Sequence record: LC727698.1
Direction: 5' to 3' (one strand)
Length of the DNA stretch: 64,000 nt
Shown: piece by piece, positions 17,424 to 43,522 of the stretch
How the letters are laid out: each line of letters begins with the position of its first letter
Numbering within the stretch: the stretch's first letter is position 1
Made by a program: the position numbers and the translations under genes
The notes under the pieces: generated by a model
Told to the model about the DNA's origin: nothing
Databases searched by the model: none
What the model saw: only the letters and a program-made list of their open reading frames with translations

Positions 17424-18650
17424 ATGTCGAAAGAAACATGCTCTTATTGCAATAAAGGCAAAGATGATGTGTCTAAGTTGTTTCGTAGCCCTGCTAAATA
17501 TGGATCAAATGTATATATATGTGACCAGTGTGTAACTCAGTGCAACAATTTTTTAGAAACTGCTGAAACAAATGATCAGGAATCTAATAAATTAGAAATA
17601 AAATACACACCTGAAGAACTAAAGGAATTGCTAGATAAAGACATTGTAGGGCAAGATCACGCAAAAGAATTACTAAGTCTAGCAGTGTATAATCATTATA
17701 AACGGGTAAACTATAACACTACTGAACATGATGTAGAGTTATCTAAATCTAACATAATGCTACTGGGACCTTCAGGCAGCGGTAAGACATTTTTAATATC
17801 TAGTATATCTAAATTGTTAAACATACCTTTTGTTTCTGTAGATTCTACTTCGCTAACAGAGGCAGGATATGTCGGCGATCATGTAGAGACTATATTTACT
17901 AGATTAATCGCAGAAGCAAATGGTGACATAGAACTAGCGCAACGTGGAATCGTATTTATAGATGAAATAGATAAGAAACGTTCTAAAAAAGGAACAAATT
18001 CTGCAGGATCTGATGTTTCCGGCGAAGGTGTCCAACAGTCTTTACTTCGGGTGCTAGAAGGAACAACAATTAAGTTAGAACTAAATTCTAACAGTATGTT
18101 TAGTCCTAGACAGGAAATTATGTTTGACACAACTAACGTTTTGTTTATAGTTGGCGGCGCATTTATAGGATTAGATGCAGTAATAAATAAAAGACTTAGT
18201 TCTACTAAATCTCAAATGGGATTTGGTTCCGAAGCTGGTAAACCCATAGAAGGTAGTTTATTCTATGTAGAACCGGAAGATTTGTATACATACGGTTTTA
18301 TAAGAGAATTTGTAGGGAGATTTCCTGTTCTTATTGCGTTTCATGATGTAACAGAGACTATGCTTCGTCGAATTCTAGTAGAGCCTAAAAGTTCTATACT
18401 TAAACAATATCAAACTATGTTTAAATTAGATAACATTGAATTAGAATTCGATGAAGATTTTATAAAATCTGTTGCTACTACAGCGTTTAATAGGAAAACA
18501 GGCGCACGTGGTTTAAGAACTATTTTAGAAAAAGAACTATCTAGTATAGCATATAGATTGCCTTCTATAAGACGAGAAGGGTTTAGCAAGATTATTATAC
18601 ACGAACTAGGAAAACATAATTTCATAAAAGGGCAAAATGAAGACATTTAA
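17424..18650 (+). CDS. clpX: ATP-dependent Clp protease ATPase ClpX
   Basis: C4 zinc finger, GPSGSGKT, EAGYVG, FIDEIDK, DVSGEGVQQ, GARGLR. Confidence 0.96.
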   Translation: MSKETCSYCNKGKDDVSKLFRSPAKYGSNVYICDQCVTQCNNFLETAETNDQESNKLEIKYTPEELKELLDKDIVGQDHAKELLSLAVYNHYKRVNYNTTEHDVELSKSNIMLLGPSGSGKTFLISSISKLLNIPFVSVDSTSLTEAGYVGDHVETIFTRLIAEANGDIELAQRGIVFIDEIDKKRSKKGTNSAGSDVSGEGVQQSLLRVLEGTTIKLELNSNSMFSPRQEIMFDTTNVLFIVGGAFIGLDAVINKRLSSTKSQMGFGSEAGKPIEGSLFYVEPEDLYTYGFIREFVGRFPVLIAFHDVTETMLRRILVEPKSSILKQYQTMFKLDNIELEFDEDFIKSVATTAFNRKTGARGLRTILEKELSSIAYRLPSIRREGFSKIIIHELGKHNFIKGQNEDI

Positions 18651-18843
18651 TATAATTACTGGTCTTACTGTAGAAGTAAGACACGATAACTTTAACCAAG
18701 CACTTAGAACTTTTACTAAAAAGGTTCAAAATTCAGGAAAATTAAAAGAAGTTCGAGAACGCGAATTCTATGAAAAGCCTTCTGTAAAAAAGACAAAAGC
18801 TAAAAAAGCAGCAATTCAACGCCAGAAAAAGAAAAAAATATAA
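18637..18843 (+). CDS. rpsU: ribosomal protein bS21
   Basis: V.VR...F..ALR.F.KK......L.E.R.REFYEKPS..K...KKAA. Confidence 0.9.
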   Translation: MKTFNIITGLTVEVRHDNFNQALRTFTKKVQNSGKLKEVREREFYEKPSVKKTKAKKAAIQRQKKKKI

Positions 18844-18845
18844 TA

Positions 18846-19181
18846 ATGGATCTTTGCAGGATTTTAAATAATGAACTTATGTTTTGCAGAAATCGTAGGA
18901 ATAAACTCTATTATAGCCTACGGCAATTGGATAAAGTCGAGATCCCTGCAGATCCTGCAGATTCTTTACTTATTTCCAGCATAAAAATGGATATAGAACA
19001 GCTCCAATCGTATAAAGATGCTATATCCGAATGCAGTAGACTCGAACAACGTATAATCTGTATAGATAAAACTATGCAGTATATCCGTCGGTATTGCAAT
19101 CATAAGTTTGTGTATCACAATACTAATTATCATACAAATACAGATGCAGAAAAATGCATTTATTGCGGATTAATAATTTAA
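18846..19181 (+). CDS. hypothetical protein, possible C-terminal metal-binding motif
   Basis: CNH...CIYCG at C-terminus. Confidence 0.55.
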   Translation: MDLCRILNNELMFCRNRRNKLYYSLRQLDKVEIPADPADSLLISSIKMDIEQLQSYKDAISECSRLEQRIICIDKTMQYIRRYCNHKFVYHNTNYHTNTDAEKCIYCGLII

Positions 19182-19182
19182 T

Positions 19183-19653
19183 ATGGCATATTTTTCAACT
19201 AAGAGATTTGGACCTATTTCTACTGGCCATCGTCAATGGAAAGATACGGGTCATTGCAGTAGAATACACGGCTATGGAAGAACAGTGAAGATTGTTTTTT
19301 CTGCTACTACATTAGATGATAAAATGTGGGTAGTAGATTTTGGTGGATTGAAAGATTTTAGGAAATGGTTGGAAGAACAATGGGATCATAATGTTTTAGT
19401 TGCATCCGATGATCCTAAGTTAAATATCCTTAAACAAATGGAACAAGAAGGTCTAGTTAAATTAAATATAATGGATGTTAAAAAAGGTCATGGTCCCGGA
19501 ATAGAAGGTTCATGTAAGCATCTGTTTGACTATTTAAATCCCATCATAGAAAAACATTCTGGCGGAAGATGTTGGGTCCATAGTATAGAAATATGGGAAC
19601 ACGAAAACAATTCCGCTATATATGAAACGTATAAGTCAACATTTAAAAGATAA
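19183..19653 (+). CDS. second QueD/PTPS-like protein
   Basis: GHRQW...HC..IHGY, WVVDFGGLK, WDH, WEHENNSAIY. Confidence 0.8.
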   Translation: MAYFSTKRFGPISTGHRQWKDTGHCSRIHGYGRTVKIVFSATTLDDKMWVVDFGGLKDFRKWLEEQWDHNVLVASDDPKLNILKQMEQEGLVKLNIMDVKKGHGPGIEGSCKHLFDYLNPIIEKHSGGRCWVHSIEIWEHENNSAIYETYKSTFKR

Positions 19654-19656
19654 ATA
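19649..19656 (+). promoter_or_regulatory. late promoter (GATAAATA) for hsp20
   Basis: Overlaps the upstream stop codon. Confidence 0.6.
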
Positions 19657-19660
19657 ACAT

Positions 19661-19731
19661 TAGTATTCCACGAGGAATACTATACAACGAGTGCCATATT
19701 GGGCTCACACTATATCTTGCGTAAAGGAGAT
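19661..19731 (+). promoter_or_regulatory. candidate ROSE-like RNA thermometer
   Basis: Three hairpins; the last pairs AUCUU(G)C with GGAGAU over the SD with a bulged G. Confidence 0.5.
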
Positions 19732-19736
19732 TAAAA

Positions 19737-20168
19737 ATGCAAAAACATGTTATAATGTCATCTAACCTAGCTAATTATAGATATGCACTAGGTGCAACTG
19801 ATTTACTTAATACTATTACTAATGAACTTAGTAGCCAGAAGTTTCCTCCCCATAATTTGATAAAGAATGCAGACGGTAGCTATTGTCTTGAATTAGCTCT
19901 TGCCGGTTATGATAAATCCGAGCTAGATGTTTATGTAGATAGCAGAGAACGACTGTTAGTAATAGAAACAAAACCGGAACGAATTTTTAAAACTGAAGTA
20001 GAATACGAACACAAAGGTATTTCTAGTAAAGATTTTTCTGTCAAATTCAGACTTGTAGACGATCTTATAAATATATCTTCGTGCGGTATGAAAAATGGCA
20101 TTCTAACAATAAAAATTCAACCGCCAAGTCCTGCAGAATCACAACGAAAAGTAATTGATATAGAATAA
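19737..20168 (+). CDS. small heat-shock protein (Hsp20/IbpA family)
   Basis: FPPHNL, ELALAGY, Y.HKGIS...F...F, NGILTI, C-terminal I.I motif. Confidence 0.92.
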   Translation: MQKHVIMSSNLANYRYALGATDLLNTITNELSSQKFPPHNLIKNADGSYCLELALAGYDKSELDVYVDSRERLLVIETKPERIFKTEVEYEHKGISSKDFSVKFRLVDDLINISSCGMKNGILTIKIQPPSPAESQRKVIDIE

Positions 20169-20175
20169 TGTTTAC

Positions 20176-20207
20176 AAATAAAAAGCTGGTATTCCAGCTT
20201 TTTATTT
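20176..20207 (+). terminator. rho-independent terminator
   Basis: AAATAAAAAGCTGG-tatt-CCAGCTTTTTATTT. Confidence 0.85.
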
Positions 20208-20218
20208 TGCTATATAAC

Positions 20219-20247
20219 TTGACGACACTGTTTAAACATATATAATA
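20219..20247 (+). promoter_or_regulatory. sigma70 promoter of clpS
   Basis: TTGACG-17-TATAAT. Confidence 0.8.
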
Positions 20248-20282
20248 ATGTGTATCAATTACGATCAACTTGGGATTTAAAA

Positions 20283-20585
20283 ATGACTGTAAAGGTAGCT
20301 AATAAAGTTGAAACTTCGTCTACTGTATTTCAACCTAAGAAATATAATGTAGTTTTCCACAACGATAACAAAACCACTATGGAATTTGTTATGCAATTGT
20401 TAGTTTATATATATGACTACGATGCATCTAGCGCATACAATACAATGATGGAAGTGCATGAACGCGGTGCAAAGATTGTAGGCAGCTATACAAAAGAAAT
20501 TGCAGAATCGAAACAGTCTAAATCTGTTCAACTTGCTATTAACAACGGTTATCCTGATTTTAAAGTAACTGTAGAAGAATCGTAA
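20283..20585 (+). CDS. clpS: Clp protease adaptor ClpS
   Basis: Y.V.FHND..T.MEFV, M.VH..G, EIAE.K; ATG 20283 preferred because 20250 lies only 2 nt after the -10 box. Confidence 0.92.
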   Translation: MTVKVANKVETSSTVFQPKKYNVVFHNDNKTTMEFVMQLLVYIYDYDASSAYNTMMEVHERGAKIVGSYTKEIAESKQSKSVQLAINNGYPDFKVTVEES

Positions 20586-20597
20586 TACAGCAAAAAC

Positions 20598-20617
20598 GGG
20601 GGTAGACACCTGCCCCC
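20598..20617 (+). terminator. GC-rich hairpin after clpS
   Basis: GGGGGTAG-acac-CTGCCCCC, weak U tract. Confidence 0.5.
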
Positions 20618-20659
20618 TTCCCTATTATAATAAATAAAGCATATAGGGATATAAGAATT

Positions 20660-21208
20660 ATGAATGATTCCATAAAGAAATACATATCTATTGCAGAAGC
20701 TGCATCGTCCGTAAAGAAAATTCCTATCCCGTATTCCGTAAGTAGTCTTAGTCCTACTTTCTCTAAAGATTTAGTAGAACTACATTACGGAACACTCTAT
20801 TCTAATTACATATCTTCAGTAAACAAAGACCCCAGTAATAAATTTTCATTTGCAGGTGCATACTTGCATGGGATTTATTTTAGTCAATTTACTGATTCTC
20901 AAAAAAGATATTCTCCTTCCGGGATATTGTTAAAAGATATAAAATCTAAATTTACTTCATTTTCTAAATTTAAAAATGAGGTTATATCTGCATGTATGGA
21001 TGTTCATGGTTCCGGATGGATTTATGTTTCTAATACCCTTGTAATAAAGGAAATCCCAAATCACGAAGTAAGAGACGATATATTCTTACTTATTGATTGT
21101 TGGGAGCATGCATATATGCTCGATTATAAAGCAGACAAGAAGTCATACTACGAGAATATATGGAATATATTTAATTGGGAATATCTGGAGGGTATGTATT
21201 CTCAATAA
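20660..21208 (+). CDS. Fe/Mn superoxide dismutase family protein
   Basis: LHY, YLH, GSGW, DCWEHAY..DY: all four metal ligands present. Confidence 0.88.
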   Translation: MNDSIKKYISIAEAASSVKKIPIPYSVSSLSPTFSKDLVELHYGTLYSNYISSVNKDPSNKFSFAGAYLHGIYFSQFTDSQKRYSPSGILLKDIKSKFTSFSKFKNEVISACMDVHGSGWIYVSNTLVIKEIPNHEVRDDIFLLIDCWEHAYMLDYKADKKSYYENIWNIFNWEYLEGMYSQ

Positions 21209-21227
21209 ATAACTTCGGTGAATACTT

Positions 21228-21512
21228 ATGAGAACTAAAAAGCATTGGGATGAATGCCTCTTTTCTTTATCTTATGAAACTGCACAACACATGGCATTTG
21301 AATTAAAGGAATTTGCCAAGCAAGCAGGATTTAATCCAAACGGTATTAAAGTATTGTCGAAAAAACAAATTCATAAATATGTAAAAGCTGATGCAGCTAT
21401 TATGTGGGGCGAAGGTCCAGAGTGTTGGGCTAATTCGTTATTGTTTAAAGATTTATTAGGAGTATACGTATCTACCTATAAGGGTAACACAATTCTATTT
21501 CATGACAGGTAA
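21228..21512 (+). CDS. hypothetical protein
   Basis: 94-aa ORF after AATAAATA late-type motif. Confidence 0.6.
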   Translation: MRTKKHWDECLFSLSYETAQHMAFELKEFAKQAGFNPNGIKVLSKKQIHKYVKADAAIMWGEGPECWANSLLFKDLLGVYVSTYKGNTILFHDR

Positions 21513-21521
21513 TGCAAATAA

Positions 21522-21815
21522 ATGATAGATATACACACTATTGGAAAAGATTACACAGTAATCAATAAAAGAAATGGTGTATCTGTAACAGTTAGTGTGG
21601 TATTTTATAAAGATATTTTACGCAATATAAAACCATATTCTATAACTCAACCTATAGACCAATATGTAATTTATGTTTGTGAACAAATTAAACCAACTAA
21701 ACCATATCACTGGCATACTAATTATTCGGAAACTATTAACTTAGAACATTTAATAAAAGAAACATTACAAAATAATAAACAATTATTAATAATACAAGAT
21801 TTATATACAGACTGA
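21522..21815 (+). CDS. hypothetical protein
   Basis: 97-aa ORF. Confidence 0.5.
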   Translation: MIDIHTIGKDYTVINKRNGVSVTVSVVFYKDILRNIKPYSITQPIDQYVIYVCEQIKPTKPYHWHTNYSETINLEHLIKETLQNNKQLLIIQDLYTD

Positions 21816-21882
21816 TATGGATAGCTTTTGCAACAAGAAGCTTGAAGATCGACACAAACGCATGACGTAATAAGGATTATAA

Positions 21883-22110
21883 ATGAAAACATTTGATTTT
21901 ACTTTTGGAGTATATAGAGCTAAACAGTGTGAATGGAAAGGAAATTCTAAAACACAATGCGGAGCAAAACCTATAGAAGGAAAAGCATATTGTTTAGAAC
22001 ACTTTAAAAAGGCATATGTTAATATTTCTGAAGAAATGTTAGATAAACAAACAGAAGCACAGTTAAAGAAATTAGAAAAAGAAATGCCTGTGGTAATCGA
22101 AGAAGAGTAA
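21883..22110 (+). CDS. GcrA C-terminal-domain-like protein
   Basis: C.W.G...CG......YC..H...AY; AAGGA RBS. Confidence 0.55.
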   Translation: MKTFDFTFGVYRAKQCEWKGNSKTQCGAKPIEGKAYCLEHFKKAYVNISEEMLDKQTEAQLKKLEKEMPVVIEEE

Positions 22111-22141
22111 AAACAATCCCCGCAATTGCGGGGATTGTTTT
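22110..22141. terminator. 32-bp perfect palindrome, bidirectional terminator
   Basis: AAAACAATCCCCGCAA|TTGCGGGGATTGTTTT. Confidence 0.85.
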
Positions 22142-22155
22142 ATAAGGAGATAAAA

Positions 22156-22800
22156 TTGGAACTTAAAACAAATGAACAGAAATCTATAATAGGAACATTT
22201 GCAACTTTAATGTTAACTAGAATATTTGCAGCCGCCGGTGCATATTTAGCATTAACTATGCCAATTCTTAATATGAATTTACTTGTGTGTATATTTTCAT
22301 ATTTTGCTATAATGTTTATTATAGATTGTATTAGAACAAATGTGTATGTGTCTATTGTAGGGAGTGTATTTTTATTATTTTGGCAAGGAATAACATTAGG
22401 GAATGGATTAACTGCGTTACTGGGGGAAGTAGCGCCATTATTAGTTTTAGTTATGTTTACTATAAGTTCGTTTTTATATATGTTTCTTTGTGCAAACGCA
22501 ATTATGTCAAAAAACATTTTTAGTTTCGCGTCGTCATTTAATGTTTCTATAGCAATGACTTTGCTTGTGACCATAGTAATGTCTATACTATTAGATCTAT
22601 CAGTCAGTTATTGTATAGGCAGTATGATAATAAACGTGATTAATTGCGTGGTAATACTCAAAACATTAGAAGATTGTATAAACGAAAAATGTGAAAATAT
22701 ATCTATGCAAAAACTATCTACAACTGTAGTATTATTTTGGTACGATACAATAATGGAGTCTATAGAGAAACTTTTAAAACTATTTACATATAAGCGGTAA
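22156..22800 (+). CDS. polytopic membrane protein, BI-1/YccA-like
   Basis: About 6-7 hydrophobic segments; TTG start after AAGGAG; C-terminal LFWYD.I....LL.LF resembles the BI-1 L(Y/F)xD.IN.F..LL motif; next to ftsH. Confidence 0.45.
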   Translation: MELKTNEQKSIIGTFATLMLTRIFAAAGAYLALTMPILNMNLLVCIFSYFAIMFIIDCIRTNVYVSIVGSVFLLFWQGITLGNGLTALLGEVAPLLVLVMFTISSFLYMFLCANAIMSKNIFSFASSFNVSIAMTLLVTIVMSILLDLSVSYCIGSMIINVINCVVILKTLEDCINEKCENISMQKLSTTVVLFWYDTIMESIEKLLKLFTYKR

Positions 22801-22811
22801 ACAGTTATATT
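22783..22811 (+). promoter_or_regulatory. putative sigma70 promoter of ftsH
   Basis: TTTACA-17-TATATT. Confidence 0.55.
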
Positions 22812-22840
22812 ACACACATAACCCCTTATAGGATCAAATA

Positions 22841-24571
22841 ATGCAACATATTGTTAAGTTCATAAAAAATAACAGATTTATTATTTTATTTCTTGTAATA
22901 TGCATAACTGGATTTGCGTTAACGATTAATTACAAGCCAACTAGTGTGTCTATAAACACCTTTTTATCAGACGCATCGAGCGGTAAAATAATTAGTGTTA
23001 AATTAAAAGAAGATGGACAAACACTACAGTATGTTACTAACACATCAGACAGAAGAAAAGTAACATTCCCCGGAGATACTAGTAAATTAATAGAATCATT
23101 TCTTAAAGCAGGTGTTCCTGTAGTAACTGAAGAACCTTCTGCCCCTAGTCCATTCCTTACTAGTTTGGTGTCTGGACTTATAGTAATGTTAGTATTTTTA
23201 ATTTTAATGGTATTCGTTTTGAAGCGAATGGGTCCTGGCTCTTCATTAGATGCAAAAAGTAAATCTAAACTTCGCAAGATAGAACCAAAAGACATTGAAG
23301 TAACGTTTAACGATGTAGCTGGTCATACTCACGAAATAAATGAAGTAAAAGAGTTAGTTGATTTTATTGCTCATCGATCTAAGTATTCTAGCATGGGAAT
23401 AGATGTGCCTCGTGGAATTCTAATGCACGGCAGCCCTGGCGTCGGGAAAACACTTTTAGCAAAGGCAATGGCAAAAGAGGCAAATGTTAATTTTTTCTAT
23501 GTTGCTGGATCTGAGTTTAATGATACATTTGTCGGTGTAGGTGCAAACCGTGTAACGGATATGTTTAAAAAAGCAAAGGAAGCTGCGCCGTGCATTATTT
23601 TCATAGACGAAATTGATGCACTTGCACAACAACGTTCTACTAAAATATCTAATGGGTCAGACCAAACACTCAATCAGTTATTAGTAGAAATGGATGGAAT
23701 GCAAGATAACGATGGTATTACAATTCTTGCAGCTACTAATAGACTAGATATATTAGATCCGGCTGTCATTCGTCCTAAACGATTTGACAGAATTGTTCAA
23801 CTAAGCTTACCTGATGTGGGGATTAGACAGAAGATTTTAGAAATAAATGCAAATGGAAAAACATTTGAAGACAATGTAGATTTTTCAGTAATAGCAAAAG
23901 GAACTCCAGGATTCTCTGGTGCTGAGTTAGCTAAACTAGTCAATGAGGCTGCAATCTATGCAGTAAGGTCTGGACAAACTGTAATTACCCAGGAGCATGT
24001 AGAACGAGCAAAAGATAAGGTGTTAATGGGTGAAAATTCGACAAAGAAATATACCCAGGAAGAATTGCTTCGTACTGCATACCATGAAGCCGGTCATGCA
24101 ATATCAGGTGTAATTTACAAATCTAATGATAACTTGCATAAAGTATCTATCATTCCTCGAGGTCTAGCACTAGGTGTAACTGTATTTCTTCCTAACGAAG
24201 AGCCTTCTGTTAGCAAAGAGCAGCTCATGAATAAATTAGTTACTTTAATGGCAGGCCGTGCAGCAGAAGAACTCATATACGGTGAGTCTGCAATATCCAC
24301 TGGTGCGAGTTCAGATATAAAGAGAGCAACCGAACTTGCAGTATACATGACCACATCGTGTGGTTTCGGTAGTATAGGACCGGTTGCGACATCGACCCTG
24401 GCTAGTTTGCAATCTAGTGCAGAACAAGATGCAGCAATTCTAGTAAAAGATGCGTACAATAAGGCTATAACATTACTTTCGGATAAAAAGGCTGAATTAA
24501 AACTTGTAGCAGACTTGTTAATGGAAAAAGAAACAATAGATTGTGCAGAAGTAGAACAAGTTCTTGCATAA
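22841..24571 (+). CDS. ftsH: ATP-dependent zinc metalloprotease FtsH
   Basis: Two N-terminal TMs, GSPGVGKT, FVGVGA, FIDEID, ATNR.D.LDPA..RP.RFDR, HEAGH, TGASSD. Confidence 0.96.
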   Translation: MQHIVKFIKNNRFIILFLVICITGFALTINYKPTSVSINTFLSDASSGKIISVKLKEDGQTLQYVTNTSDRRKVTFPGDTSKLIESFLKAGVPVVTEEPSAPSPFLTSLVSGLIVMLVFLILMVFVLKRMGPGSSLDAKSKSKLRKIEPKDIEVTFNDVAGHTHEINEVKELVDFIAHRSKYSSMGIDVPRGILMHGSPGVGKTLLAKAMAKEANVNFFYVAGSEFNDTFVGVGANRVTDMFKKAKEAAPCIIFIDEIDALAQQRSTKISNGSDQTLNQLLVEMDGMQDNDGITILAATNRLDILDPAVIRPKRFDRIVQLSLPDVGIRQKILEINANGKTFEDNVDFSVIAKGTPGFSGAELAKLVNEAAIYAVRSGQTVITQEHVERAKDKVLMGENSTKKYTQEELLRTAYHEAGHAISGVIYKSNDNLHKVSIIPRGLALGVTVFLPNEEPSVSKEQLMNKLVTLMAGRAAEELIYGESAISTGASSDIKRATELAVYMTTSCGFGSIGPVATSTLASLQSSAEQDAAILVKDAYNKAITLLSDKKAELKLVADLLMEKETIDCAEVEQVLA

Positions 24572-24598
24572 TATTAAGTAATTAAATAAGGCACTATT

Positions 24599-25969
24599 AT
24601 GATTCGTACAATTTTAGACGAAATCGGAAATACTACTAAACGAACTACTAAATTAGCTATTCTAGAAAGAAACAAGGATAATGACACATTAAAAAAAGTA
24701 ATACATTTGGCATTAAATCCATTTATTAACTTTTATATAAAGAAAATACCAGAATTCACGCGAACAGATACCATTCTTACCTTAGAACAAGCACTAACCG
24801 AATTATCTGTTCTATCTGATAGAATAAAAACAGGTAATGCTGCAATATTGCATCTAACATATATTCTTTCTAGTTTAACAGATGACGATGCAAATGTAAT
24901 TATTCGGATTATTAGAAAGGATTTACGCGCAGGGATACAAGATGCTACAGTTAATAAAATATGGAAGGATCTAGTACCTAAATATCCGTGCTTGCTAGCA
25001 GAACCCGCAACAGAAACTCTTCTTAGTAAATGCAAATTACCATATTATTCTCAGATAAAATCAGACGGAACTAGAATTAATATTCATGTTAGTAAATCCG
25101 GAATTGTTTCATTTTATGGAAGATCGGGTAAATCATACGATTTTAAAGATATTTTAGATGACGCATTTGTTTCGCTAATTAAATATTTCGACGAAGATAT
25201 GGTTTTTGATGGCGAATTAATAGTTGTAGATTCTAATAATAATATACTCCCCAGACGGACAGGAAACGGTATCATAAGTAAAGCACAAAGTGATACCATT
25301 ACAGATAATGAAATAAAGAATGTAAGAGCAATTCTTTGGGATTGTATTCCTCTTAGATGTTTTAATGAACATAAATGCACTACACCCTATTCTAGTAGAT
25401 TCGAAAGTTTATCAAATGCAATACATAAATTGCAAGTAGATGATGATTATATAGAAAGTAAAATATATAATACTATTTTAGGAAATATAGGGCAAATTAG
25501 GTTAGCAGAAACTCGTCTCCTTTATAGCAAAGAGGAAGTAAAAATCTTCTTCGACGAAGCAATATCTAGAAACGAAGAAGGCATAATGGTAAAATGTCCT
25601 GATAGTATATGGGAAAATAAACGAAGTAAGTTAGTATTAAAATATAAATCAGAAAAAGTATGCGAATTAATTGTAACTGGGTTTAATTACGGAACAGTAG
25701 GTACTAAAACAGAACATAAAGTTGGATCATTAATATGTGAAAGCTCAGACGGTAAGGTAATAGTCAACATATCTGGTTTAACTGACAGCGAACGCGATGA
25801 TGCAACAGCAAATTTTGAAAATAAATGGAAACATAGCATAGTGAGTGTTATGTATAATGAAAGAATTAAAAGCGTAGACCGAATAGGTGTTGATTCTCTT
25901 TTTCTTCCTAGATTTTTAGAAATAAGAACAGATAAATTTGAAGCAGATTCTAGCAAAGATATAAAATAA
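24599..25969 (+). CDS. ATP-dependent DNA ligase (T4 gp30-like)
   Basis: K.DG.R (KSDGTR), FDGEL, EEGIMVK, WENKRS, LFLPRF..IR.DK. Confidence 0.93.
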   Translation: MIRTILDEIGNTTKRTTKLAILERNKDNDTLKKVIHLALNPFINFYIKKIPEFTRTDTILTLEQALTELSVLSDRIKTGNAAILHLTYILSSLTDDDANVIIRIIRKDLRAGIQDATVNKIWKDLVPKYPCLLAEPATETLLSKCKLPYYSQIKSDGTRINIHVSKSGIVSFYGRSGKSYDFKDILDDAFVSLIKYFDEDMVFDGELIVVDSNNNILPRRTGNGIISKAQSDTITDNEIKNVRAILWDCIPLRCFNEHKCTTPYSSRFESLSNAIHKLQVDDDYIESKIYNTILGNIGQIRLAETRLLYSKEEVKIFFDEAISRNEEGIMVKCPDSIWENKRSKLVLKYKSEKVCELIVTGFNYGTVGTKTEHKVGSLICESSDGKVIVNISGLTDSERDDATANFENKWKHSIVSVMYNERIKSVDRIGVDSLFLPRFLEIRTDKFEADSSKDIK

Positions 25970-25978
25970 GGATATTTT

Positions 25979-26140
25979 ATGATAAATGTAGGCGACGATG
26001 TTATTATTAAAACCGAATTTGGCGAGACAAGCGGCATTGTTATAAAATTTATATCTAATAAAACTATTGCTATAGTAGAATTAGAAGACGGTAACGAAAT
26101 AGAAATAGGCAAAGGCGACTTAGAGTTGAGTAATAAATAA
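25979..26140 (+). CDS. small KOW/SH3-like protein (53 aa, not in ORF track)
   Basis: MINVGDDVIIKTEFGETSGIVIKFISNKTIAIVELEDGNEIEIGKGDLELSNK; TAAGGA RBS; fills the gap after ligase. Confidence 0.7.
   Translation: MINVGDDVIIKTEFGETSGIVIKFISNKTIAIVELEDGNEIEIGKGDLELSNK
26132..26139 (+). promoter_or_regulatory. late promoter (AATAAATA)
   Basis: Upstream of fibre-like ORF 26160. Confidence 0.5.
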
Positions 26141-26159
26141 TAAAAAAGGATATATTATT

Positions 26160-26669
26160 ATGACATTACCTTCTTCGGGTTCTCTTTCTACACAGCAAAT
26201 TAACGTTGAATTAGGAAATCCACAAGATGCTCGGTTAGATGTAAACGCTGCCGAAATGAGGATATTATGTGGTGCAGCAACTACAGGGCAAGTAAGTATT
26301 GCTGGCGCATATGGTAGAATGCCAACAGGACAATATATATTAACTTCTGCTCAGTTGCAAGCTGCACCGAATGCCCAATATGGATATAGAGTGTTTGCAA
26401 CAGGTTCTAAAATAAACAATATTGTTTTTAAAGGATACAATTTAACTATAGTTGCATGGAATGATTACGATAAAGTGCTAGGAATAGGTGTCGATCAAAC
26501 TAATGCACCAACCAACTTAGTAACTAATTTCTGGAGTTCTGTAACTGGTTATTTAGGTGCACCAACACAATATACTTCAGATTTGGGAGGTAATACAGTA
26601 TACGGATGGACCTGGAATGGTACAAATCCATTCCCTGTATCTTCGGTTCAAATGGTGCAAATTGTGTAA
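26160..26669 (+). CDS. putative small tail-fibre/virion appendage protein
   Basis: M.LPSSG.LS...I..E.G...S...YG N-terminal module seen in phage fibre tip proteins. Confidence 0.55.
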   Translation: MTLPSSGSLSTQQINVELGNPQDARLDVNAAEMRILCGAATTGQVSIAGAYGRMPTGQYILTSAQLQAAPNAQYGYRVFATGSKINNIVFKGYNLTIVAWNDYDKVLGIGVDQTNAPTNLVTNFWSSVTGYLGAPTQYTSDLGGNTVYGWTWNGTNPFPVSSVQMVQIV

Positions 26670-26698
26670 AATAAAAGGGCATTGAGCCCTTTTATTTT
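26668..26698 (+). terminator. rho-independent terminator
   Basis: AAAATAAAAGGGC-attga-GCCCTTTTATTTT. Confidence 0.85.
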
Positions 26699-26730
26699 AT
26701 CATAATTGTGTATATATTTTATATATTTGG

Positions 26731-26739
26731 TGTTATAAT
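26731..26739 (+). promoter_or_regulatory. extended -10 promoter
   Basis: TGtTATAAT upstream of the exonuclease; no clear -35. Confidence 0.5.
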
Positions 26740-26765
26740 GTATACAATAACAAGAGAATATTATA

Positions 26766-27539
26766 ATGACACCACGTTTAAAGGAATTACTAGAATCACT
26801 TATAATTTTAGATACAGAAACTACACATTTAGATACTCGTGTAGCAGAAATAATAGAATTAGGTATAGCGTCTTATACTAACAAATGGACTTATAGTAGT
26901 GAATTATTTAAACCCAGAGTTAATCATGCGCAAATAACTCCTAAAATAAGTTCTATAACTGGCATAACAGATCGTATGGTAGAAGGAAAACCTACTTTTG
27001 CCGATGTAGTCGACCAATACAAATCTATTACAAGCTGCCAACTAATAGTTGCACACAATGCTCCGTATGATAAAAAGGTATTAGAGAGATATAACATAGC
27101 ATCTAGCACTAATTGGTTGTGTACTTTAAAACTTGCACGATATGCATATCAAACCGATCCTACTTTTGAAGAATTTAAATTATCTTATCTAAGATATAAA
27201 TTAATGTTAGATATTCCTGACGATTTCGTAGCGCATAGAGCAGGAGAAGATGCATATATGTGCGGTGTATTATTGGAACGAATAGTAACTGATTTAGAGT
27301 CTAAGAATAAATTAGATAGTGATATACCGTATGCAGATCAACTTATAGAAATATCTAATAAGCCGTTAATGCTTTCGTCTATGCCATTTGGCAAACATAA
27401 AGATAAACCCTTAGATGAAGTTCCAATGGACTATTGGATTTGGGCATTAAATAATTTAGATGCATTAGACGAAACAAAACCCGAATATAATAGAGACTTA
27501 GCGTATACATTAGAACAATATTTGAGCGACAAGATATAA
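26766..27539 (+). CDS. DEDDh 3'-5' exonuclease (ExoX/epsilon-like) with C-terminal MPFGK module
   Basis: DTETT, AHNAPYD, WLCTLKLAR, AHRAGED, MPFGKHK..PL.EVP.DY..W. Confidence 0.9.
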   Translation: MTPRLKELLESLIILDTETTHLDTRVAEIIELGIASYTNKWTYSSELFKPRVNHAQITPKISSITGITDRMVEGKPTFADVVDQYKSITSCQLIVAHNAPYDKKVLERYNIASSTNWLCTLKLARYAYQTDPTFEEFKLSYLRYKLMLDIPDDFVAHRAGEDAYMCGVLLERIVTDLESKNKLDSDIPYADQLIEISNKPLMLSSMPFGKHKDKPLDEVPMDYWIWALNNLDALDETKPEYNRDLAYTLEQYLSDKI

Positions 27540-27565
27540 AAATGCCCCGTACGGGGCATTTTTAT
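27536..27565. terminator. 30-bp perfect palindrome, bidirectional terminator
   Basis: ATAAAAATGCCCCGT|ACGGGGCATTTTTAT between convergent genes. Confidence 0.85.
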
Positions 27566-27933
27566 CTATCCATAATATTTCCGGGACCATATGGAATATC
27601 GTTGTATTGTTTATAACTAGGATCTATTTTTTGGTAAGGCTCAAACGGTAATCCTGCACGTTCTTTTGCCATTTGTAAACCTCTAAAACCAGGAGATTGT
27701 GTATCGTCGTTTTTTGGATGATTATTAAATGGTTTGTTGGCAGGATTTTTCGGAATAGTTTTAAATACAGGAGTCGGTCCGTCACCTGTCATACCCAAAA
27801 CTGCATATCTCTTAATCTGTTTTTGATTATTAGTATATAATTCTGGATTGTAAAATGCATCAATGTCAGTGTTTGCAGCACCGTACAATTCTATATGTGT
27901 TTTATTTTCTAGTATTATTTCTTTTATTTTCAT
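27562..27933 (-). CDS. hypothetical late protein
   Basis: Reverse complement of 27901-27950 reads ATG AAA ATA AAA GAA ATA (MKIKEI), so the gene is on the minus strand; stop TAA at 27564-27562. Confidence 0.7.
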   Translation of the reverse strand: MKIKEIILENKTHIELYGAANTDIDAFYNPELYTNNQKQIKRYAVLGMTGDGPTPVFKTIPKNPANKPFNNHPKNDDTQSPGFRGLQMAKERAGLPFEPYQKIDPSYKQYNDIPYGPGNIMDR

Positions 27934-27938
27934 AACAA

Positions 27939-27946
27939 TATTTATC
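27939..27946 (-). promoter_or_regulatory. late promoter (GATAAATA), minus strand
   Basis: TATTTATC on plus strand, 5 nt upstream of ATG 27933. Confidence 0.6.
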
Positions 27947-27967
27947 ATACTAAACTTTAATTATAAC

Positions 27968-27996
27968 TAGACGATGTATAATAACATTGCTATTAT
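27968..27996 (+). promoter_or_regulatory. sigma70 promoter of clpP
   Basis: TAGACG-17-TATTAT with TGn extension. Confidence 0.7.
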
Positions 27997-28029: not shown

Positions 28030-28701
28030 ATGAGCTACAATTATACAGCACAAGGACAATATCCTACCGAAGCTGGTTTGATCCCCATGGTTGTCGAAAA
28101 TAACGGCAACGGCGAACGTAGTTGGGATATTTATTCCCGTCTTCTAAAAGAGCGTATTGTTTTTCTTAATGGTCCAGTTCGCGACGAGATGGCATCCGTA
28201 ATTGTTGCCCAGCTTCTTTTCCTCGAATCGGAATCGGCAGAACAGCCCGTTTCGATGTATATTAACTCTCCGGGCGGCAGCGTTACTGCTGGTTTGTCTA
28301 TTTATAACACGATGGAATATATTTCGTGTCCCGTTAATACCATCGTGTTGGGCCAAGCATGCAGTATGGGGTCTTTCCTAGCACAAGCAGGTACTCCGGG
28401 GCATCGTTACGTGTCTAGCGAATCCCGCACTATGATTCATCGAGCCAGCGGCGGCTTCGGGGGATTCGGCGGCACAACTCAACAAGTTGAGTTAGGAATT
28501 GAAGATGCTGTCCGCCATGCGGCAGAACTATCTAAAATTAACAAGCGTCTCACTGAGCTGTATGTTCATCATAACACTGCCGGCAAGACGTTCGACGAAT
28601 TTATCGAAATTATGAAATTCGACACATTCCTCTCTGCTCAAGAAGCAGTTGAGTTCGGGTTGGCAGACAAAGTATTCCGCACTAAAGCTGACCTGAAGTA
28701 A
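28030..28701 (+). CDS. clpP: ATP-dependent Clp protease proteolytic subunit
   Basis: [20 protein letters not shown], Ser (ACSMG), His (MIH), Asp (DTF). Confidence 0.96.
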
Positions 28702-32474: not shown

Positions 32475-32488
32475 TAAAAGGTAAAGGA

Positions 32489-36060: not shown

Positions 36061-36387
36061 ATGAATATAATACCACTTCATAACAATATTATTGTAACTA
36101 ATTTTAAAAAAGGCGAACGCACGGTAGGCGGTATTATTTTTACAGATGATAACGGTAAGTCACACGGCATCCGCGCTCGGTGGGCACAAGTATCCCATAT
36201 AAGAGAAGATCAAAAAGATACATTTGTTGTAGGCCAATGGGTGTTAATTAAGCACGGGCGCTGGTCCCGTCCAGTACACACTACAGATCAAAATGTATAT
36301 TACTGTGCTGAAATAGATTCTATTTTATTGATATCCGATGAAGAGCCAGAAGACAATATAATAGTAGAAACACGAGTTTATAATTAA
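36061..36387 (+). CDS. groS: GroES-like co-chaperonin
   Basis: I.PL...IIV, T.GGII, VG..VL, I......IL. Confidence 0.8.
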   Translation: MNIIPLHNNIIVTNFKKGERTVGGIIFTDDNGKSHGIRARWAQVSHIREDQKDTFVVGQWVLIKHGRWSRPVHTTDQNVYYCAEIDSILLISDEEPEDNIIVETRVYN

Positions 36388-39289: not shown

Positions 39290-39312
39290 TAATATATTAT
39301 TTGGATAGTAAA

Positions 39313-39834
39313 ATGAACAAACACAATGCAGATACTGCTAGAGAGAATTTAGTTCAAATAGCAGGAAATAATAAAGTATTAGATATGCTCATAGAATTAG
39401 AAAAAACATTAGATAACTGTAATGTTTTTTCTTATGCAAACTGGAATAAAGGAGAATTAGTTGCTGGACCCTTTATTTCTAGATATTGGGTTACTACTAC
39501 TTGGATGTACAATGAAAAAGATATGCCGGATCCCGATGCAGGATTGCGTTTACTAAAATACGGTTGCAAAGTAAAGTATGAAAGGGATGTTTTTTTAGAA
39601 CCAAAAAAAGTAACAGGTAGACCTGACTACGAAAACCCATCCACTAAGCAAGCAAAAATAGAAGAATTGCCTATTTGGTTAGTGACAATAACTATGCCTA
39701 GGAAATTTATAGACGAAGCAATAATAGATGGCATGCAGGATTTCTCTAACGTAGATGATATAGATCCTAGTGCAATAGCTGATGTAGAAGCAGCAGGCGA
39801 AAACGGAATAAACGATGTAGATGGAAATCTATAA
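39313..39834 (+). CDS. hypothetical protein
   Basis: NW..GELV.GP...RYWV...MPDP..G.RL...GC pattern. Confidence 0.7.
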   Translation: MNKHNADTARENLVQIAGNNKVLDMLIELEKTLDNCNVFSYANWNKGELVAGPFISRYWVTTTWMYNEKDMPDPDAGLRLLKYGCKVKYERDVFLEPKKVTGRPDYENPSTKQAKIEELPIWLVTITMPRKFIDEAIIDGMQDFSNVDDIDPSAIADVEAAGENGINDVDGNL

Positions 39835-39863
39835 AATTATTCCATATTATAAAGGGGTATATA

Positions 39864-40565
39864 ATGTTAGCTAGACACTCATTAAAAGGAACCGTATTAC
39901 CTATAATTTCGGTGGATGAGTATATGCCTAAATCTGGAACACAGGAAGAAGTTATAGTCATTGCATTCTATACCATTGACGAAGACCCTGCGTTTGATTT
40001 AGACGATTTTATAGAAAAAAGTTTTATAGAAGTATTAGATGTTGATGTAAGTCCCAATCCCGACGAAAACGGAAATTATTTAGTATTTGTAGAATTAAAA
40101 AGAAAAGCAGGCTTCTTTGAAAAATTTTACAAGATTATAAAAGATGTAGAAAATGTTTCTGGAAAGCAAGACTGGTTAGTGAAGGCATATCTTTGTAACG
40201 AATTACTACCATACAATGACGAAAGACTATTAGATTATATAATATTACTAGGTGACGAAGAAGCATCAATAACAGAAAGTGTAATATCTATGCTTACTGA
40301 TAGCGATATATCTTCTGCTCACATAGATGATTCTAGAATATACATATCTAATTCTCATAGAACAGTAAGTTTTGAGCCATTGTATATAGGCGAAACAGCA
40401 TTTAATAGTTTAAAACTAAATGAATGTGCTATAGAACTATCTAATGTAGATAGTAATGTTGCTTTATTATCGGCATTTTTAGGTAAAAAATGGGAAGTAT
40501 ATAAACTAAACGAATATATAATACTTCAACACCAATCTAAGCAACCTATTATAGCCAAATTATAA
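39864..40565 (+). CDS. hypothetical protein
   Basis: 233 aa, acidic, ITES motif. Confidence 0.7.
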
Positions 40566-40569
40566 TCAA

Positions 40570-40596
40570 AAAGCACTTATTTTCGATAAGTGCTTT
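40570..40596 (+). terminator. hairpin/terminator
   Basis: AAAGCACTTAT-tttcg-ATAAGTGCTTT. Confidence 0.6.
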
Positions 40597-40603
40597 AACT
40601 ATC

Positions 40604-41293
40604 ATGAAGAATTGGCAAACAATCCTTGGCGTATCTGCTAATCCCACAGAAAAACAGATAAAGACTGCATATAGAAAACTTGCATCAAAATATCATCCTG
40701 ACAGAAATAAAGATAAAGATGCAGAAAACATGTTTAAACAAGTAAGGGAAGCATACGAATATGCAATAAAATGGATTTCTATTAAAACAGAACAATACAC
40801 AGATACAGTATATATTCCATTAAAATACCAAAATAAAGGCGGCAAATTCAAGACAGCTAATCATAAATTTATTATAGAAATTCCGCCACATTTCCCTCAT
40901 AATTCACAAAAAATAATAATAGTAAACAATTCTATATTATTAGTTACTGTAATATTCATACATGATACATTTTCTATAGCTCAAAATGGAATAGATGTAT
41001 ATGCAACTATTTCTGTAGAAAGTCTCGACATAATTATGGGTACAGAAATAATAGTTGAGCATCCGTACGGAAATAAGATAAAAGTAGGTATACCTACATC
41101 ATTTGTATCTGGATCTAAAATACTAGTGAAGAATAAAGGTATTAAGAATACATATACAGTAAACAATATTTTAGAAACCATAACAGGTCATTTGTATATA
41201 ACTGTCAACATGTTCACAAAAGTTCGTTTGACTAAAAGTAGCGATACTAGTATACTACTAACGTACAAAGCAAAACCATACACAATCTCGTAA
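40604..41293 (+). CDS. DnaJ/CbpA-type co-chaperone (J domain plus C-terminal domain, no Zn finger)
   Basis: LGV....IK.AYRKLA.KYHPDRN...F..V.EAY; G.L...V in C-domain. Confidence 0.88.
41228..41256 (+). promoter_or_regulatory. sigma70 promoter of clpA (inside the dnaJ-like 3' end)
   Basis: TTGACT-17-TATACT. Confidence 0.75.
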
Positions 41294-41302
41294 GGGGTAC
41301 AC

Positions 41303-43522
41303 ATGGATAGCCAAAAGAAACTGAATACCGTACTTACTGAAGCAAAAAAACTTGCAGTAAGTCACCAACACGAAGCCATTACTTCAGATCATGTATTGTA
41401 TGTTTTATTAGGATACGACGAAGTAAAGGACTGTGTTAAAAACTGCAATGCAGACCCGGATCAATTAACTAAAGCAGTATTTGATTTCCTTGTTACCCAG
41501 TTAGGAAAATCCCGACACATAACTGATATGAATATTGATATCAGTCCCTCTCTTAGTCGCTGGTGCCAGCAATTGGCAACTAAAATTGCATTAGATCCTA
41601 ACAAAGCAATGACGTATGTCGATATGCTCGATGCACTCATCAAAGACACCAGTTGCAATGCAAGCCAGCTTCTCGCGCACTACGGTGTTACTACTGCTGT
41701 AGTAACTGAAGCGAAGAAATCTGCAGAAGCAGAATCCCTTATAAAGTCGTTTACTCGCAATCTTAACGACGAAGTATCTGAGGGCAAAATCGATCCGGTT
41801 ATCGGCCGGGAAACTGAACTAGAAGAAGTTATCGAAGCCCTTGCCCGCCGGCGAAAAAACAATTGCATTCTTACCGGCAAAGAAGGTGTAGGTAAGACGG
41901 CAATTGCCGAAGGGTTGGCGATGAAAATCGTCAATGGTGAGGTCCCCGAAGCAATTGCTGACAAACAAGTTATTTCACTCGATATCGGCGCGATGATGGC
42001 AGGCACTAAATATCGCGGCGAGTTCGAAGAGCGTATGAAAGCGCTGCTAGACGAACTAAAAGCAATGAAAAATGCCATCGTCTTCATTGACGAAATACAT
42101 ATGATCATGGGCGCCGGTGCAAGTAATGGTTCGTCAGTAGACGCTGCTAACCTGCTCAAGCCAGAATTGGCAAAAGGAACACTTCGTTGCATAGGCGCAA
42201 CTACCTACGACGAATATAGTACACACTTCGAAAAAGATCGGGCATTAATGCGTCGGTTCCAAAAAGTGGATGTTCCGCCGCCTAGTGTAGGCGACACTAA
42301 AAAAATAGTTGCCGGACTAAAGCAATATTACGAAGAGTTCCATGGCGTCAAATACGACGTAGGGACTCTAGATCTAGCAGTCGATTTGACTGAACGATAC
42401 ATCAAAACTCGGCACCAGCCCGACAAATCAATCGATGCAATAGACCTTGTCGGCGCCAGAGCTAAATTAGCAGGGATTTCTACCATTACCGAGCGTATGG
42501 TCATAGAAACTGTAGCTAAACTAGCTCATATGCGTCCGGAAATGTTAGATAACACCGAAAACGACACTATTGCTCGTCTAGAAGGTAACCTCAAACACGA
42601 TGTGTTTGGGCAAGACGAAGCCATTAACAAGCTCTGCGAAGCAGTGATGGTACACAAAGCAGGACTTCGAGATGCTAATAAACCCATCGGTAACTTCTTA
42701 TTAGTAGGTCCTACCGGTACTGGCAAAACGTTCTTGGCAAAAAAACTATCCCAACATATGGGTATTCCTTTGGTGCGGTTCGATATGTCTGAATACCAAG
42801 AACAGCATAGCGTCGCCCGGCTGCTCGGCGCGCCGCCCGGATATGTAGGGCACGGCGAAGGTGAAGCGGGCGCGGGGCAGTTAATCTCTGAGATTGAAAA
42901 AAATCCCAACTGCATCTTGTTGCTAGACGAAATCGAAAAAGCACACCCGAAGGTATTTAGTACGTTCCTTCAGGTGATGGATGACGCCCGGCTAACTTCG
43001 TCAACTGGCAAAACTGTATTCTTTGGTAACGTTTTGCTACTAATGACATCTAACTCCGGCGCTGCTCAAGCTGCTAAAGCATCAATTGGATTTGGAAATA
43101 ATTTTAACGACGGTGCAATAGATAGCGCAGTTACAAAAGGATTTGCGCCTGAATTCCGGAACAGGCTCGACGGCATTGTTAAGTTCTCTGCGCTCACTAT
43201 TAACGAAATGTCTAAGATTGTAGACACTGAGTTTGCTAAAGTGCAAGCAAGTGTACTAGAAAAAGGCGTATCGTTGATCCTTACCCAAGAAGCACGTCAA
43301 AAATTAGCAACAGATGGATATGATCCTAAGATGGGAGCCCGGCCGCTCGCGAGGCTGTTCCAAGAGAAAGTCAAGTTGCCGCTGTCAAAGCTGATGCTAC
43401 TTGGCGATCTTAAAAATGGCGGTCACGCAGAAGTCAGGGTAGTAGCAGACGAAGTTGTAGTTATACAAGCAATTGCCCCTGCTACTAAAGCTAAAAAGAA
43501 AATAGACCAAACTGTAGTTTAA
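41303..43522 (+). CDS. clpA: ATP-dependent Clp protease ATPase ClpA
   Basis: Clp N-domain, two AAA+ modules (G.EGVGKT, KYRGEFEER; GPTGTGKT, PGYVG), no ClpB middle domain, IGF ClpP-docking loop. Confidence 0.95.
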   Translation: MDSQKKLNTVLTEAKKLAVSHQHEAITSDHVLYVLLGYDEVKDCVKNCNADPDQLTKAVFDFLVTQLGKSRHITDMNIDISPSLSRWCQQLATKIALDPNKAMTYVDMLDALIKDTSCNASQLLAHYGVTTAVVTEAKKSAEAESLIKSFTRNLNDEVSEGKIDPVIGRETELEEVIEALARRRKNNCILTGKEGVGKTAIAEGLAMKIVNGEVPEAIADKQVISLDIGAMMAGTKYRGEFEERMKALLDELKAMKNAIVFIDEIHMIMGAGASNGSSVDAANLLKPELAKGTLRCIGATTYDEYSTHFEKDRALMRRFQKVDVPPPSVGDTKKIVAGLKQYYEEFHGVKYDVGTLDLAVDLTERYIKTRHQPDKSIDAIDLVGARAKLAGISTITERMVIETVAKLAHMRPEMLDNTENDTIARLEGNLKHDVFGQDEAINKLCEAVMVHKAGLRDANKPIGNFLLVGPTGTGKTFLAKKLSQHMGIPLVRFDMSEYQEQHSVARLLGAPPGYVGHGEGEAGAGQLISEIEKNPNCILLLDEIEKAHPKVFSTFLQVMDDARLTSSTGKTVFFGNVLLLMTSNSGAAQAAKASIGFGNNFNDGAIDSAVTKGFAPEFRNRLDGIVKFSALTINEMSKIVDTEFAKVQASVLEKGVSLILTQEARQKLATDGYDPKMGARPLARLFQEKVKLPLSKLMLLGDLKNGGHAEVRVVADEVVVIQAIAPATKAKKKIDQTVV

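Follow-up and report, generated by a model that had tools for sequence, protein, structure and literature searches.

Why a bacteriophage should carry proteases, unfoldases and co-chaperones of its own is the question raised by a part of the genome of Pseudomonas phage 30-3 (LC727698.1). The stretch of DNA analysed here (the window) is 64,000 nucleotides long, and between its positions 17424 and 43522 eight uninterrupted genes were found on the + strand: clpX, hsp20, clpS, ftsH, clpP, a GroES/gp31-like gene, a short dnaJ and clpA. Positions 17424-29000 showed 100% identity to phage 30-3, a PA5oct-like jumbo phage, and 98.8-99.3% identity to PA5oct, MIJ3, Paride, Cassandra, Deifobo, Ettore, Callisto, PAC2 and 30-2. 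The genus Wroclawvirus (Arenbergviridae) consists of non-nucleus-forming jumbo myoviruses of about 287 kb and 33% guanine plus cytosine (GC) that infect P. aeruginosa. Family assignments were made with Pfam, NCBIfam equivalog models and PHROG, functional motifs were identified by aligning the proteins with solved structures, and the annotation of PA5oct (MK797984.1) was read genome-wide except for 150001-152318 (about 2.3 kb). A preliminary description of the region, which had listed eight intact genes with preserved catalytic and docking motifs, was confirmed on both points: each gene is present, unbroken and of the family named, and the ATPase, pore-loop, catalytic and ClpP-docking motifs are retained, the exception being the RKH loop of ClpX. 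These sequence data support the view that the set is phage-borne, intact and functional-looking. The interpretation that we prefer, to which we give about an even chance of being correct, is that it is an old, vertically inherited set of genes for protein turnover and folding, which would serve a general supply role and, in addition, the folding and assembly of a large virion.

The 408-amino acid (aa) product of clpX (17424..18650, +) is an AAA+ unfoldase that carries a C4 zinc finger at its N-terminus; Pfam recognized zf-C4_ClpX, AAA_2 and D2-small in it. It exceeded both NCBIfam equivalog cut-offs (456 bits against 359 and 416 against 371). Such cut-offs were reached only by ClpX and the neighbouring ribosomal protein bS21; ClpA, FtsH, ClpP, ClpS, Hsp20, DnaJ and GroES all scored below theirs and are thus divergent members of their families. 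Comparison with solved ClpX showed the four zinc-finger Cys residues, Walker A and B, GYVG, GARGLR and the sensor-2 Arg, and the IGF-type ClpP-docking loop reads MGF. The RKH loop was missing from the window protein and from the sampled IMG/VR homologues, where a hypervariable segment takes its place, but was present in E. coli-derived ClpX and in the ClpX of phages Atu_ph07 (RK-type) and Phosso. In the phage clade, membership of which rests on identities and shared insertions and deletions, the motor, docking loop and zinc finger are conserved despite the hypervariable loop. The RKH loop is a subgroup feature of proteobacterial ClpX, not a family-defining one, and in E. coli ClpX it helps select ssrA-type substrates. 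Because this loop is divergent here, the alignment suggests that the substrate range of the phage ClpX may differ from that of the host ClpX.

The clpP gene (28030..28701, +) encodes a 223-aa serine peptidase (Pfam CLP_protease, 202 bits). Alignment with PDB structures located the triad Ser112/His137/Asp198 and the N-terminal axial loop, and the triad was invariant in 85 of 85 sequences. Directly after the catalytic His, in the region of residues ~138-160, the window ClpP and all 81 of the 81 sampled IMG/VR homologues carry a 10-residue insertion in the handle region, which is absent from E. coli-derived, Atu_ph07 and Phosso ClpP. The insertion accounts for the NCBIfam score of 236 bits, below the cut-off of 249, and it defines a large ClpP subfamily that is apparently phage-borne. 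The closest relatives (66-69% identity) were encoded on phage-like contigs of up to 346 kb, and bacterial ClpP is about 46% identical to the phage protein. The possibility that ClpP is a prohead (head-maturation) protease was considered and rejected: the NCBIfam model Clp_rel_HeadMat scored 88.9 bits against a cut-off of 120, ClpP proper scored 236, the neighbours of the gene are exoX and small open reading frames (ORFs), not portal, scaffold or capsid genes, and PA5oct has another gene, gp152, for a prohead protease/scaffold of the T4 type. In the RefSeq copy of PA5oct (NC_071039.1), ClpP is named 'head maturation protease' and ClpX/ClpA 'porphyrin biosynthesis', which are misleading automated names.

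A second unfoldase that could dock with ClpP is encoded by clpA (41303..43522, +), whose 739-aa product is a double-ring AAA+ protein with Clp_N, two AAA modules and D2-small. The N-domain match was weak (Pfam, 28 bits), and the best NCBIfam model was ClpA (790 bits, cut-off 993), ClpB scoring 644. The protein has both Walker A/B pairs, KYR and GYVG pore loops and an IGF docking loop, and is without the middle domain; across 81 ClpA sequences the Walker motifs and an IGF-type loop were broadly kept and the GARP motif was invariant. The ClpA N-degron adaptor is encoded by clpS (20283..20585, +; 100 aa; Pfam ClpS, 76.8 bits), with a whole-protein NCBIfam score of 64 against a cut-off of 149. The mechanically called clpS ORF begins at GTG 20250 and PA5oct annotates ATG 20283; as the clpS promoter overlaps the GTG, ATG 20283 is likely the start. 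The alignment showed counterparts of the E. coli pocket residues (N, D, T, M, H) and of the ClpA-contacting E/K, and N27, D28, T31, H59 and K77 were invariant in 17 of 17 phage homologues. Thus the proposal that ClpS, ClpA and ClpP constitute an N-degron pathway is supported as far as sequence goes, every feature expected of the three proteins being found and the ClpS pocket and contacts being intact.

The product of ftsH (22841..24571, +) is a putative membrane AAA+ zinc metalloprotease of 576 aa, made up of FtsH_ext, AAA, lid and Peptidase_M41. Alignment and hydropathy showed two transmembrane segments, a periplasmic domain, Walker A and B, FVGVGA, the second region of homology and HEAGH; the C-terminus is about 70 residues shorter than that of E. 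coli FtsH, and the NCBIfam FtsH_fam score was 550 against a cut-off of 600. The nearest relatives were two metagenomic proteins (P0131 and P0132, 45-52% identity) and those of a few related viral contigs (40-43%); otherwise they were gammaproteobacterial (42-44%).

Three predicted ATP-independent helpers complete the set. The first is a small heat-shock protein encoded by hsp20 (19737..20168, +; 143 aa; Pfam HSP20, 40.6 bits; phrog_432, E 3e-25), which has an alpha-crystallin domain and a C-terminal I-x-I motif and whose best solved relative is 7ck4, 'Heat shock protein'. The second, the 229-aa dnaJ product (40604..41293, +), contains a J domain at residues 6-52 with HPD, which is present in essentially all J-protein homologues, and one DnaJ_C stretch at 113-202. 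No zinc-finger domain match was obtained with Pfam, NCBIfam or alignment, so that it lacks type I DnaJ architecture and is a J-protein, not a full DnaJ. The third is a GroES/T4-gp31-like co-chaperonin candidate of 108 aa (36061..36387, +), for which Pfam Cpn10 gave 21.8 bits against a cut-off of 21.1 and NCBIfam 23 against 128. Its best PHROG was 'head morphogenesis' (E 4e-7), followed by 'GroES' (E 5e-6), and the link to gp31 is by PHROG family, with no direct match to a named gp31 entry. An AlphaFold model with a predicted local distance difference test score of 77 gave 24 top PDB fold matches that were all Cpn10/GroES (TM-score ~0.5, E ~3e-3), and a low-confidence segment (19-23) occupies the mobile-loop position. 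By sequence this assignment is the weakest of the eight; PHROG and the moderate-confidence model lend it some support.

The preliminary description regarded this network as nearly complete, which is an overstatement: no Hsp70, Hsp60, GrpE, ClpB, Lon or HslUV is annotated in the part of PA5oct that was read. As the phage has no annotated Hsp70 or Hsp60, the J-protein and the GroES-like lid must use the host DnaK and GroEL. It had also called the system orthogonal to that of the host. ClpX and ClpA have docking loops of the canonical IGF type, and ClpP departs from the canonical form only in its handle insertion; because the docking elements are canonical, orthogonality to host partners is not supported, and the sequence offers no argument against mixed complexes with host subunits. 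Taken together, the data support a set of functional, long-retained phage machines, predicted to comprise ClpXP, ClpAP-ClpS, FtsH and host-dependent co-chaperones.

The genes had been described as scattered over 26 kb. They lie instead in conserved blocks, the order of which recurs across IMG/VR contigs: the first runs folE-queD-clpX-S21-hsp20-clpS-sod-ftsH-lig...clpP and the second is dnaJ-clpA among virion genes. Both recur in many IMG/VR contigs at 40-67% identity. When window proteins were searched against fetched loci (75 ClpX, 80 ClpS and 80 ClpA), S21 was directly 3' of clpX in 42 of 75 ClpX loci, hsp20 directly 5' of clpS in 72 of 80, dnaJ directly 5' of clpA in 63 of 80, and a homologue of the virion gene 43640-44074 was 3' of clpA in 43 of 80. 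Three contigs reproduced long stretches of the window order at 38-61% protein identity: 3300034417_000033 (107 kb) has folE-queD-clpX-S21...clpS-sod-ORF-ftsH-lig...exoX-ORF-clpP, 3300040801_002714 has queD-clpX-S21-hsp20-clpS-sod-ORF-ORF-ftsH-lig, and 3300033066_001786 carries clpX, S21, hsp20, clpS, ftsH, dnaJ and clpA. In total, IMG/VR yielded 75 ClpX loci and at least 595 ClpP, 597 ClpA and 579 ClpS loci. For FtsH a single-sequence scan gave 2 loci and an alignment-based scan at least 513, a set that includes giant-virus bins and probable cellular contamination. Among cultured phages outside the genus, ClpS occurred together with ClpA, ClpX and ClpP only in Atu_ph07, Phosso and SCTP-2, and a credible FtsH only in Microcystis phage MaAM05; many 'phage' records matching FtsH, ClpX or ClpP were short, unannotated, host-DNA-like contigs and were not counted.

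Comparison with PA5oct revealed 110 synonymous and 4 nonsynonymous codon changes in the eight genes, against 137 and 35 in 26 neighbouring genes (odds ratio 7.0, Fisher p = 3e-5), demonstrating that the eight genes are under strong purifying selection. Base composition was phage-like and host-unlike in six of the eight. The other two, clpP and clpA, had a GC content at third codon positions (GC3) of 0.45 and 0.41, compared with 0.18-0.28 for all other genes in the region, and their environmental homologues were without this anomaly, which may reflect lineage-specific allele replacement or codon adaptation. Its interpretation as a signature of high expression was rejected, as the GC3 of the major head gene is only 0.30 and the terminal repeat is where other high-GC genes are clustered.

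PA5oct-like phages require the host RNA polymerase, and their promoters are of the form TTGAC/TATAATA. Sigma70-like sites matching at 10 or more of 12 positions on the + strand were about 7-fold denser in intergenic DNA, which makes up 5% of the DNA analysed for promoter density, than in coding DNA (3.25 vs 0.48 per kb); total site counts did not exceed those in shuffled sequences. Of the sigma70 promoters proposed in the preliminary description, two were strong (11/12): an intergenic site (16032..16060, +; TTGACA-17-TATACT) ahead of the folE-queD-clpX-S21 string, between which and clpX no terminator-like site was found on the + strand, and the clpS site (20219..20246, +; TTGACG-16-TATAAT), which follows a hairpin and T-run after hsp20. 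The promoter-like sites for ftsH (22783-22811, +) and clpA (41228-41256, +) scored 10/12 and overlap upstream genes, lying inside the 3' ends of the preceding gene and of dnaJ, respectively. The promoter claimed for clpP is weak (9/12). A putative intrinsic terminator (hairpin and T-run) follows clpP at 28728-28747, and another follows clpA at ~43533-43562.

FtsH and ClpP bear electrospray ionization tandem mass spectrometry notes in PA5oct, as do non-virion enzymes such as ribonucleotide reductase, and both are therefore translated. A single published statement on timing exists for the eight genes, according to which transcription of ftsH continues throughout infection; neither the 2018 preprint nor the Callisto paper says anything about the eight. 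Early action, as previously proposed, is not supported: the sigma70-like promoters are its sole basis, ftsH is transcribed throughout, and dnaJ-clpA lies inside a block of virion genes.

On the interpretation preferred here, one peptidase (ClpP) would be served by two unfoldases able to dock with it, with ClpS as adaptor and FtsH at the membrane; the small heat-shock protein, the J-protein and the lid would assist. ClpXP, ClpAP-ClpS and FtsH could act without host subunits, and the J-protein and lid would recruit host DnaK and GroEL. The main role would be to maintain degradation, amino-acid recycling and folding capacity as phage transcripts replace host ones, the recycling involving PA5oct oligopeptidase A, which is encoded elsewhere in the genome; a second role would be assistance in the folding and assembly of a very large virion. 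Rather than one operon-like system, the genes make up at least two modules in separate places: clpX-S21-hsp20-clpS-sod-ftsH...clpP, which is surrounded by genes of nucleotide metabolism, and dnaJ-clpA, which is surrounded by virion genes. This two-module layout implies that the set probably has more than one role. Several points weigh against a general supply role. None of the eight proteins has a known substrate, interaction or phenotype, the idea of amino-acid recycling is based on gene content alone, and the position of dnaJ-clpA among structural genes fits morphogenesis at least equally well. In addition, the GC3 anomaly of clpP and clpA hints at a separate history, and the assignments of the GroES-like protein and of a protein with similarity to BI-1 (described below) are weak. 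In our ranking the general supply of turnover and folding comes first; virion morphogenesis and a targeted takeover of the host compete with it and overlap in part, and we consider neutral carriage unlikely.

The first rival is that ClpA with its J-protein, and likewise the GroES/gp31-like lid, serve mainly in assembly, as chaperones or unfoldases of the proteins of capsid and tail, with ClpP possibly trimming structural proteins. We consider this possible but on the whole unlikely as the principal function. On both sides of the dnaJ-clpA pair lie genes of which the PA5oct products have been detected in virions (gp295, gp299 and gp300), an order kept in 43-63 of 80 IMG/VR loci; ClpA is near-core in Rak2-like phages and moraphages; the best PHROG of the GroES-like protein is 'head morphogenesis'; and assembly roles have been suggested by Iyer et al. 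(2021). Other points weigh against such a role. ClpX, ClpS, FtsH and ClpP lie among metabolic, not structural, genes, ClpS has no obvious use in assembly, ClpP fits the housekeeping model far better than the head-maturation model, and gp152 already provides a prohead protease/scaffold of the T4 type. In the window, the virion-detected flanks of dnaJ-clpA (39301-44074 and 44088-50798) include a 2236-aa protein with phage-tail-repeat motifs, and the order structural-structural-dnaJ-clpA-structural is widely conserved.

A second rival, for which we see a rather small chance, is targeted takeover or counter-defence, the reading of the preliminary description. The phage proteases would then selectively destroy particular regulators of the host, antitoxins or proteins of defence; ClpAP would be redirected by ClpS towards N-degron substrates, and phage-specific selectivity would come from the altered ClpX loop. 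The replacement and hypervariability of the RKH loop beside a conserved motor and docking loop, the invariant ClpS pocket and the sigma70-type promoters ahead of clpS and the clpX operon are all consistent with this, and host-directed roles have been proposed for the patchily distributed phage ClpP and ClpS (Iyer et al., 2021). However, no target is known and no defence-related genes are linked to the modules. Moreover, counter-defence genes are usually patchy and fast-evolving, whereas the genes studied here are stably syntenic and slowly evolving. The last alternative, that these are host-derived passengers carried by a large genome with no specific role in infection, could draw on the 42-47% identity of ClpX, ClpP, ClpA and FtsH to close bacterial counterparts and on the many host-like genes of jumbo phages, but it is highly improbable in view of the strong purifying selection, the deeply conserved gene order and motifs of distant viral contigs, the phage-clade-specific ClpP insertion and ClpX loop, the phage-like composition of six of the genes and the detection of FtsH and ClpP as proteins.

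A further reading, which we regard as doubtful, is that self-sufficient ClpXP, ClpAP-ClpS and FtsH, together with oligopeptidase A, enable lytic replication in deep-dormant, non-growing P. aeruginosa. Proteases encoded beside translation-related genes (bS21, transfer RNAs, TilS) would release amino acids and remove aggregates of host protein, and both effects would apply once synthesis in the host has been shut down. The only phages recovered that replicate on deep-dormant hosts were Paride and its close relatives, which are 99% identical to the window; 'mobilizing resources' was proposed to account for this, with no mention of the Clp/FtsH genes (Maffei et al., 2024). If the phage proteases and co-chaperones do shape the infected proteome, this would be a clear case of a degradation system brought by a virus, beyond hijack of that of the host, and it might help explain the killing of antibiotic-tolerant dormant cells by a therapy-relevant group of phages.

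The gene content itself is already known from GenBank annotation and publications. In PA5oct the genes are named EST35_0255 (ClpX), 0259 (heat shock protein), 0260 (ClpS), 0265 (FtsH-interacting membrane protein), 0266 (FtsH), 0272 (ClpP), 0290 (chaperonin), 0297 (DnaJ) and 0298 (ClpA), and the relatives PA5oct, MIJ3, Paride, Callisto, PAC2, 30-2 and 30-3 are 98.8-100% identical in DNA, with no distinguishing differences in sequence. FtsH of PA5oct has been discussed in two papers that treat only FtsH and TilS, not the Clp genes (Imam, 2019; Lood, 2020). No treatment of the Clp genes of PA5oct-like phages was found in the literature, nor any link between them and Paride's replication on hosts that are dormant, in agreement with the earlier remark that an integrated function is not established. 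The idea as such is not new, comparable sets and similar speculation having been published for Atu_ph07, for jumbo phages generally and for bS21 phages. The section on 'Clp-like proteins' of Atu_ph07 proposed aggregate clearance and keeping the host alive (Attai, 2018), and ClpP, ClpS, ClpA, ClpX, Hsp10, Hsp20 and DnaJ of jumbo phages were surveyed by Iyer et al. (2021). S21, Hsp20 and Clp genes were found close together in many phage genomes, with 'controlling the proteostasis network' as the suggested function (Chen et al., 2022), and a 2025 paper on moraphages reported ClpA, DnaJ and Hsp20 in them; these two reports give neighbour counts only and describe neither the fixed order clpX-S21-hsp20-clpS nor its link to ftsH nor the peculiarities of the sequences. 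The present analysis adds that the genes make up modules that are conserved and under selection across a large lineage of uncultured phages, and that lineage-specific changes of structure occur in the phage ClpP and ClpX.

Compared with ClpAP-ClpS and ClpXP of E. coli and P. aeruginosa, the phage proteins have the same domains, triad, pore loops, IGF/IGL-type docking, and ClpS pocket and contacts, but they are 33-47% identical, the phage ClpX is without the RKH loop and the phage ClpP has the handle insertion. The phage clp genes are dispersed, whereas the bacterial ones form clpP-clpX and clpS-clpA operons. Atu_ph07, Sinorhizobium phage Phosso and Salicola phage SCTP-2 likewise encode ClpX, ClpP, ClpA and ClpS, with dnaJ adjoining clpA. 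Atu_ph07 differs in having ClpB, in giving no FtsH match, in a ClpP without the 10-residue insertion, in an RK-type ClpX loop and in having IF-3 after clpX. T4 gp31 works with host GroEL. Together with the J-domain protein of phage RB43, gp31 and GroES provide a parallel for the GroES-fold protein and HPD J-protein found here, as phage co-chaperones for host machines; unlike these precedents, the present J-protein has one DnaJ C-terminal domain and always adjoins clpA. Binding of the RB43 protein to DnaK is the precedent cited in the 2025 moraphage paper.

Other genes adjoin the two modules. The start of the bS21 gene (18637..18843, +; NCBIfam S21p, 52.6 bits against a cut-off of 28.95) overlaps the clpX stop codon. 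In Atu_ph07 and Phosso an IF-3 gene, not S21, stands 3' of clpX, so that clpX adjoins a translation factor in two separate phage lineages. Between clpS and ftsH lies a Fe/Mn superoxide dismutase-like gene, sod (20660..21208, +; Pfam Sod_Fe_C), the position of which is kept in two distant viral loci (L336 and L359). A conserved 94-aa ORF between sod and ftsH (21228..21512, +) has homologues at the same position in these two loci and in a third (L073), and showed a weak match, under the cut-off, to Pfam Tox-MPTase3. Directly 5' of ftsH is a gene for a multi-pass membrane protein (22126..22800, +), called 'FtsH-interacting' in PA5oct. Its Pfam Bax1-I score of 21.2 bits is under the cut-off of 34.1, a weak similarity to BI-1/YccA, and hydropathy indicated 5-6 transmembrane segments, compared with seven in the Bax1-I fold; it had no match in NCBIfam, PHROG or PDB and no homologue in the related contigs.

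Between the promoter of the folE operon and the start of folE, the leader contains a strong hairpin (16074-16100), and the genes 3' of it belong to the 7-deazaguanine/queuosine pathway (folE and two queD-like genes). An RNA element in this leader was rejected as a candidate, as Rfam gave no family match across the whole window, folE leader included. The 'polyubiquitin-like' PA5oct gp281 (window ~32465-32749) was likewise rejected as a member of the set, being without Pfam or PHROG support. Outside the window, PA5oct has an annotated oligopeptidase A (gp188; MK797984.1 113008-115029), a DksA/TraR-type zinc-finger protein (275072-275302), a thioredoxin-like protein (248735-249889) and TilS, the first three of which fit a theme of stress and protein turnover. 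In two parts of MK797984.1, positions 1-39080 (the long terminal repeat, several genes) and 234078-239264 (two genes), there are genes with a GC content of 50-62% against 33% for the genome, which look like compositional islands.

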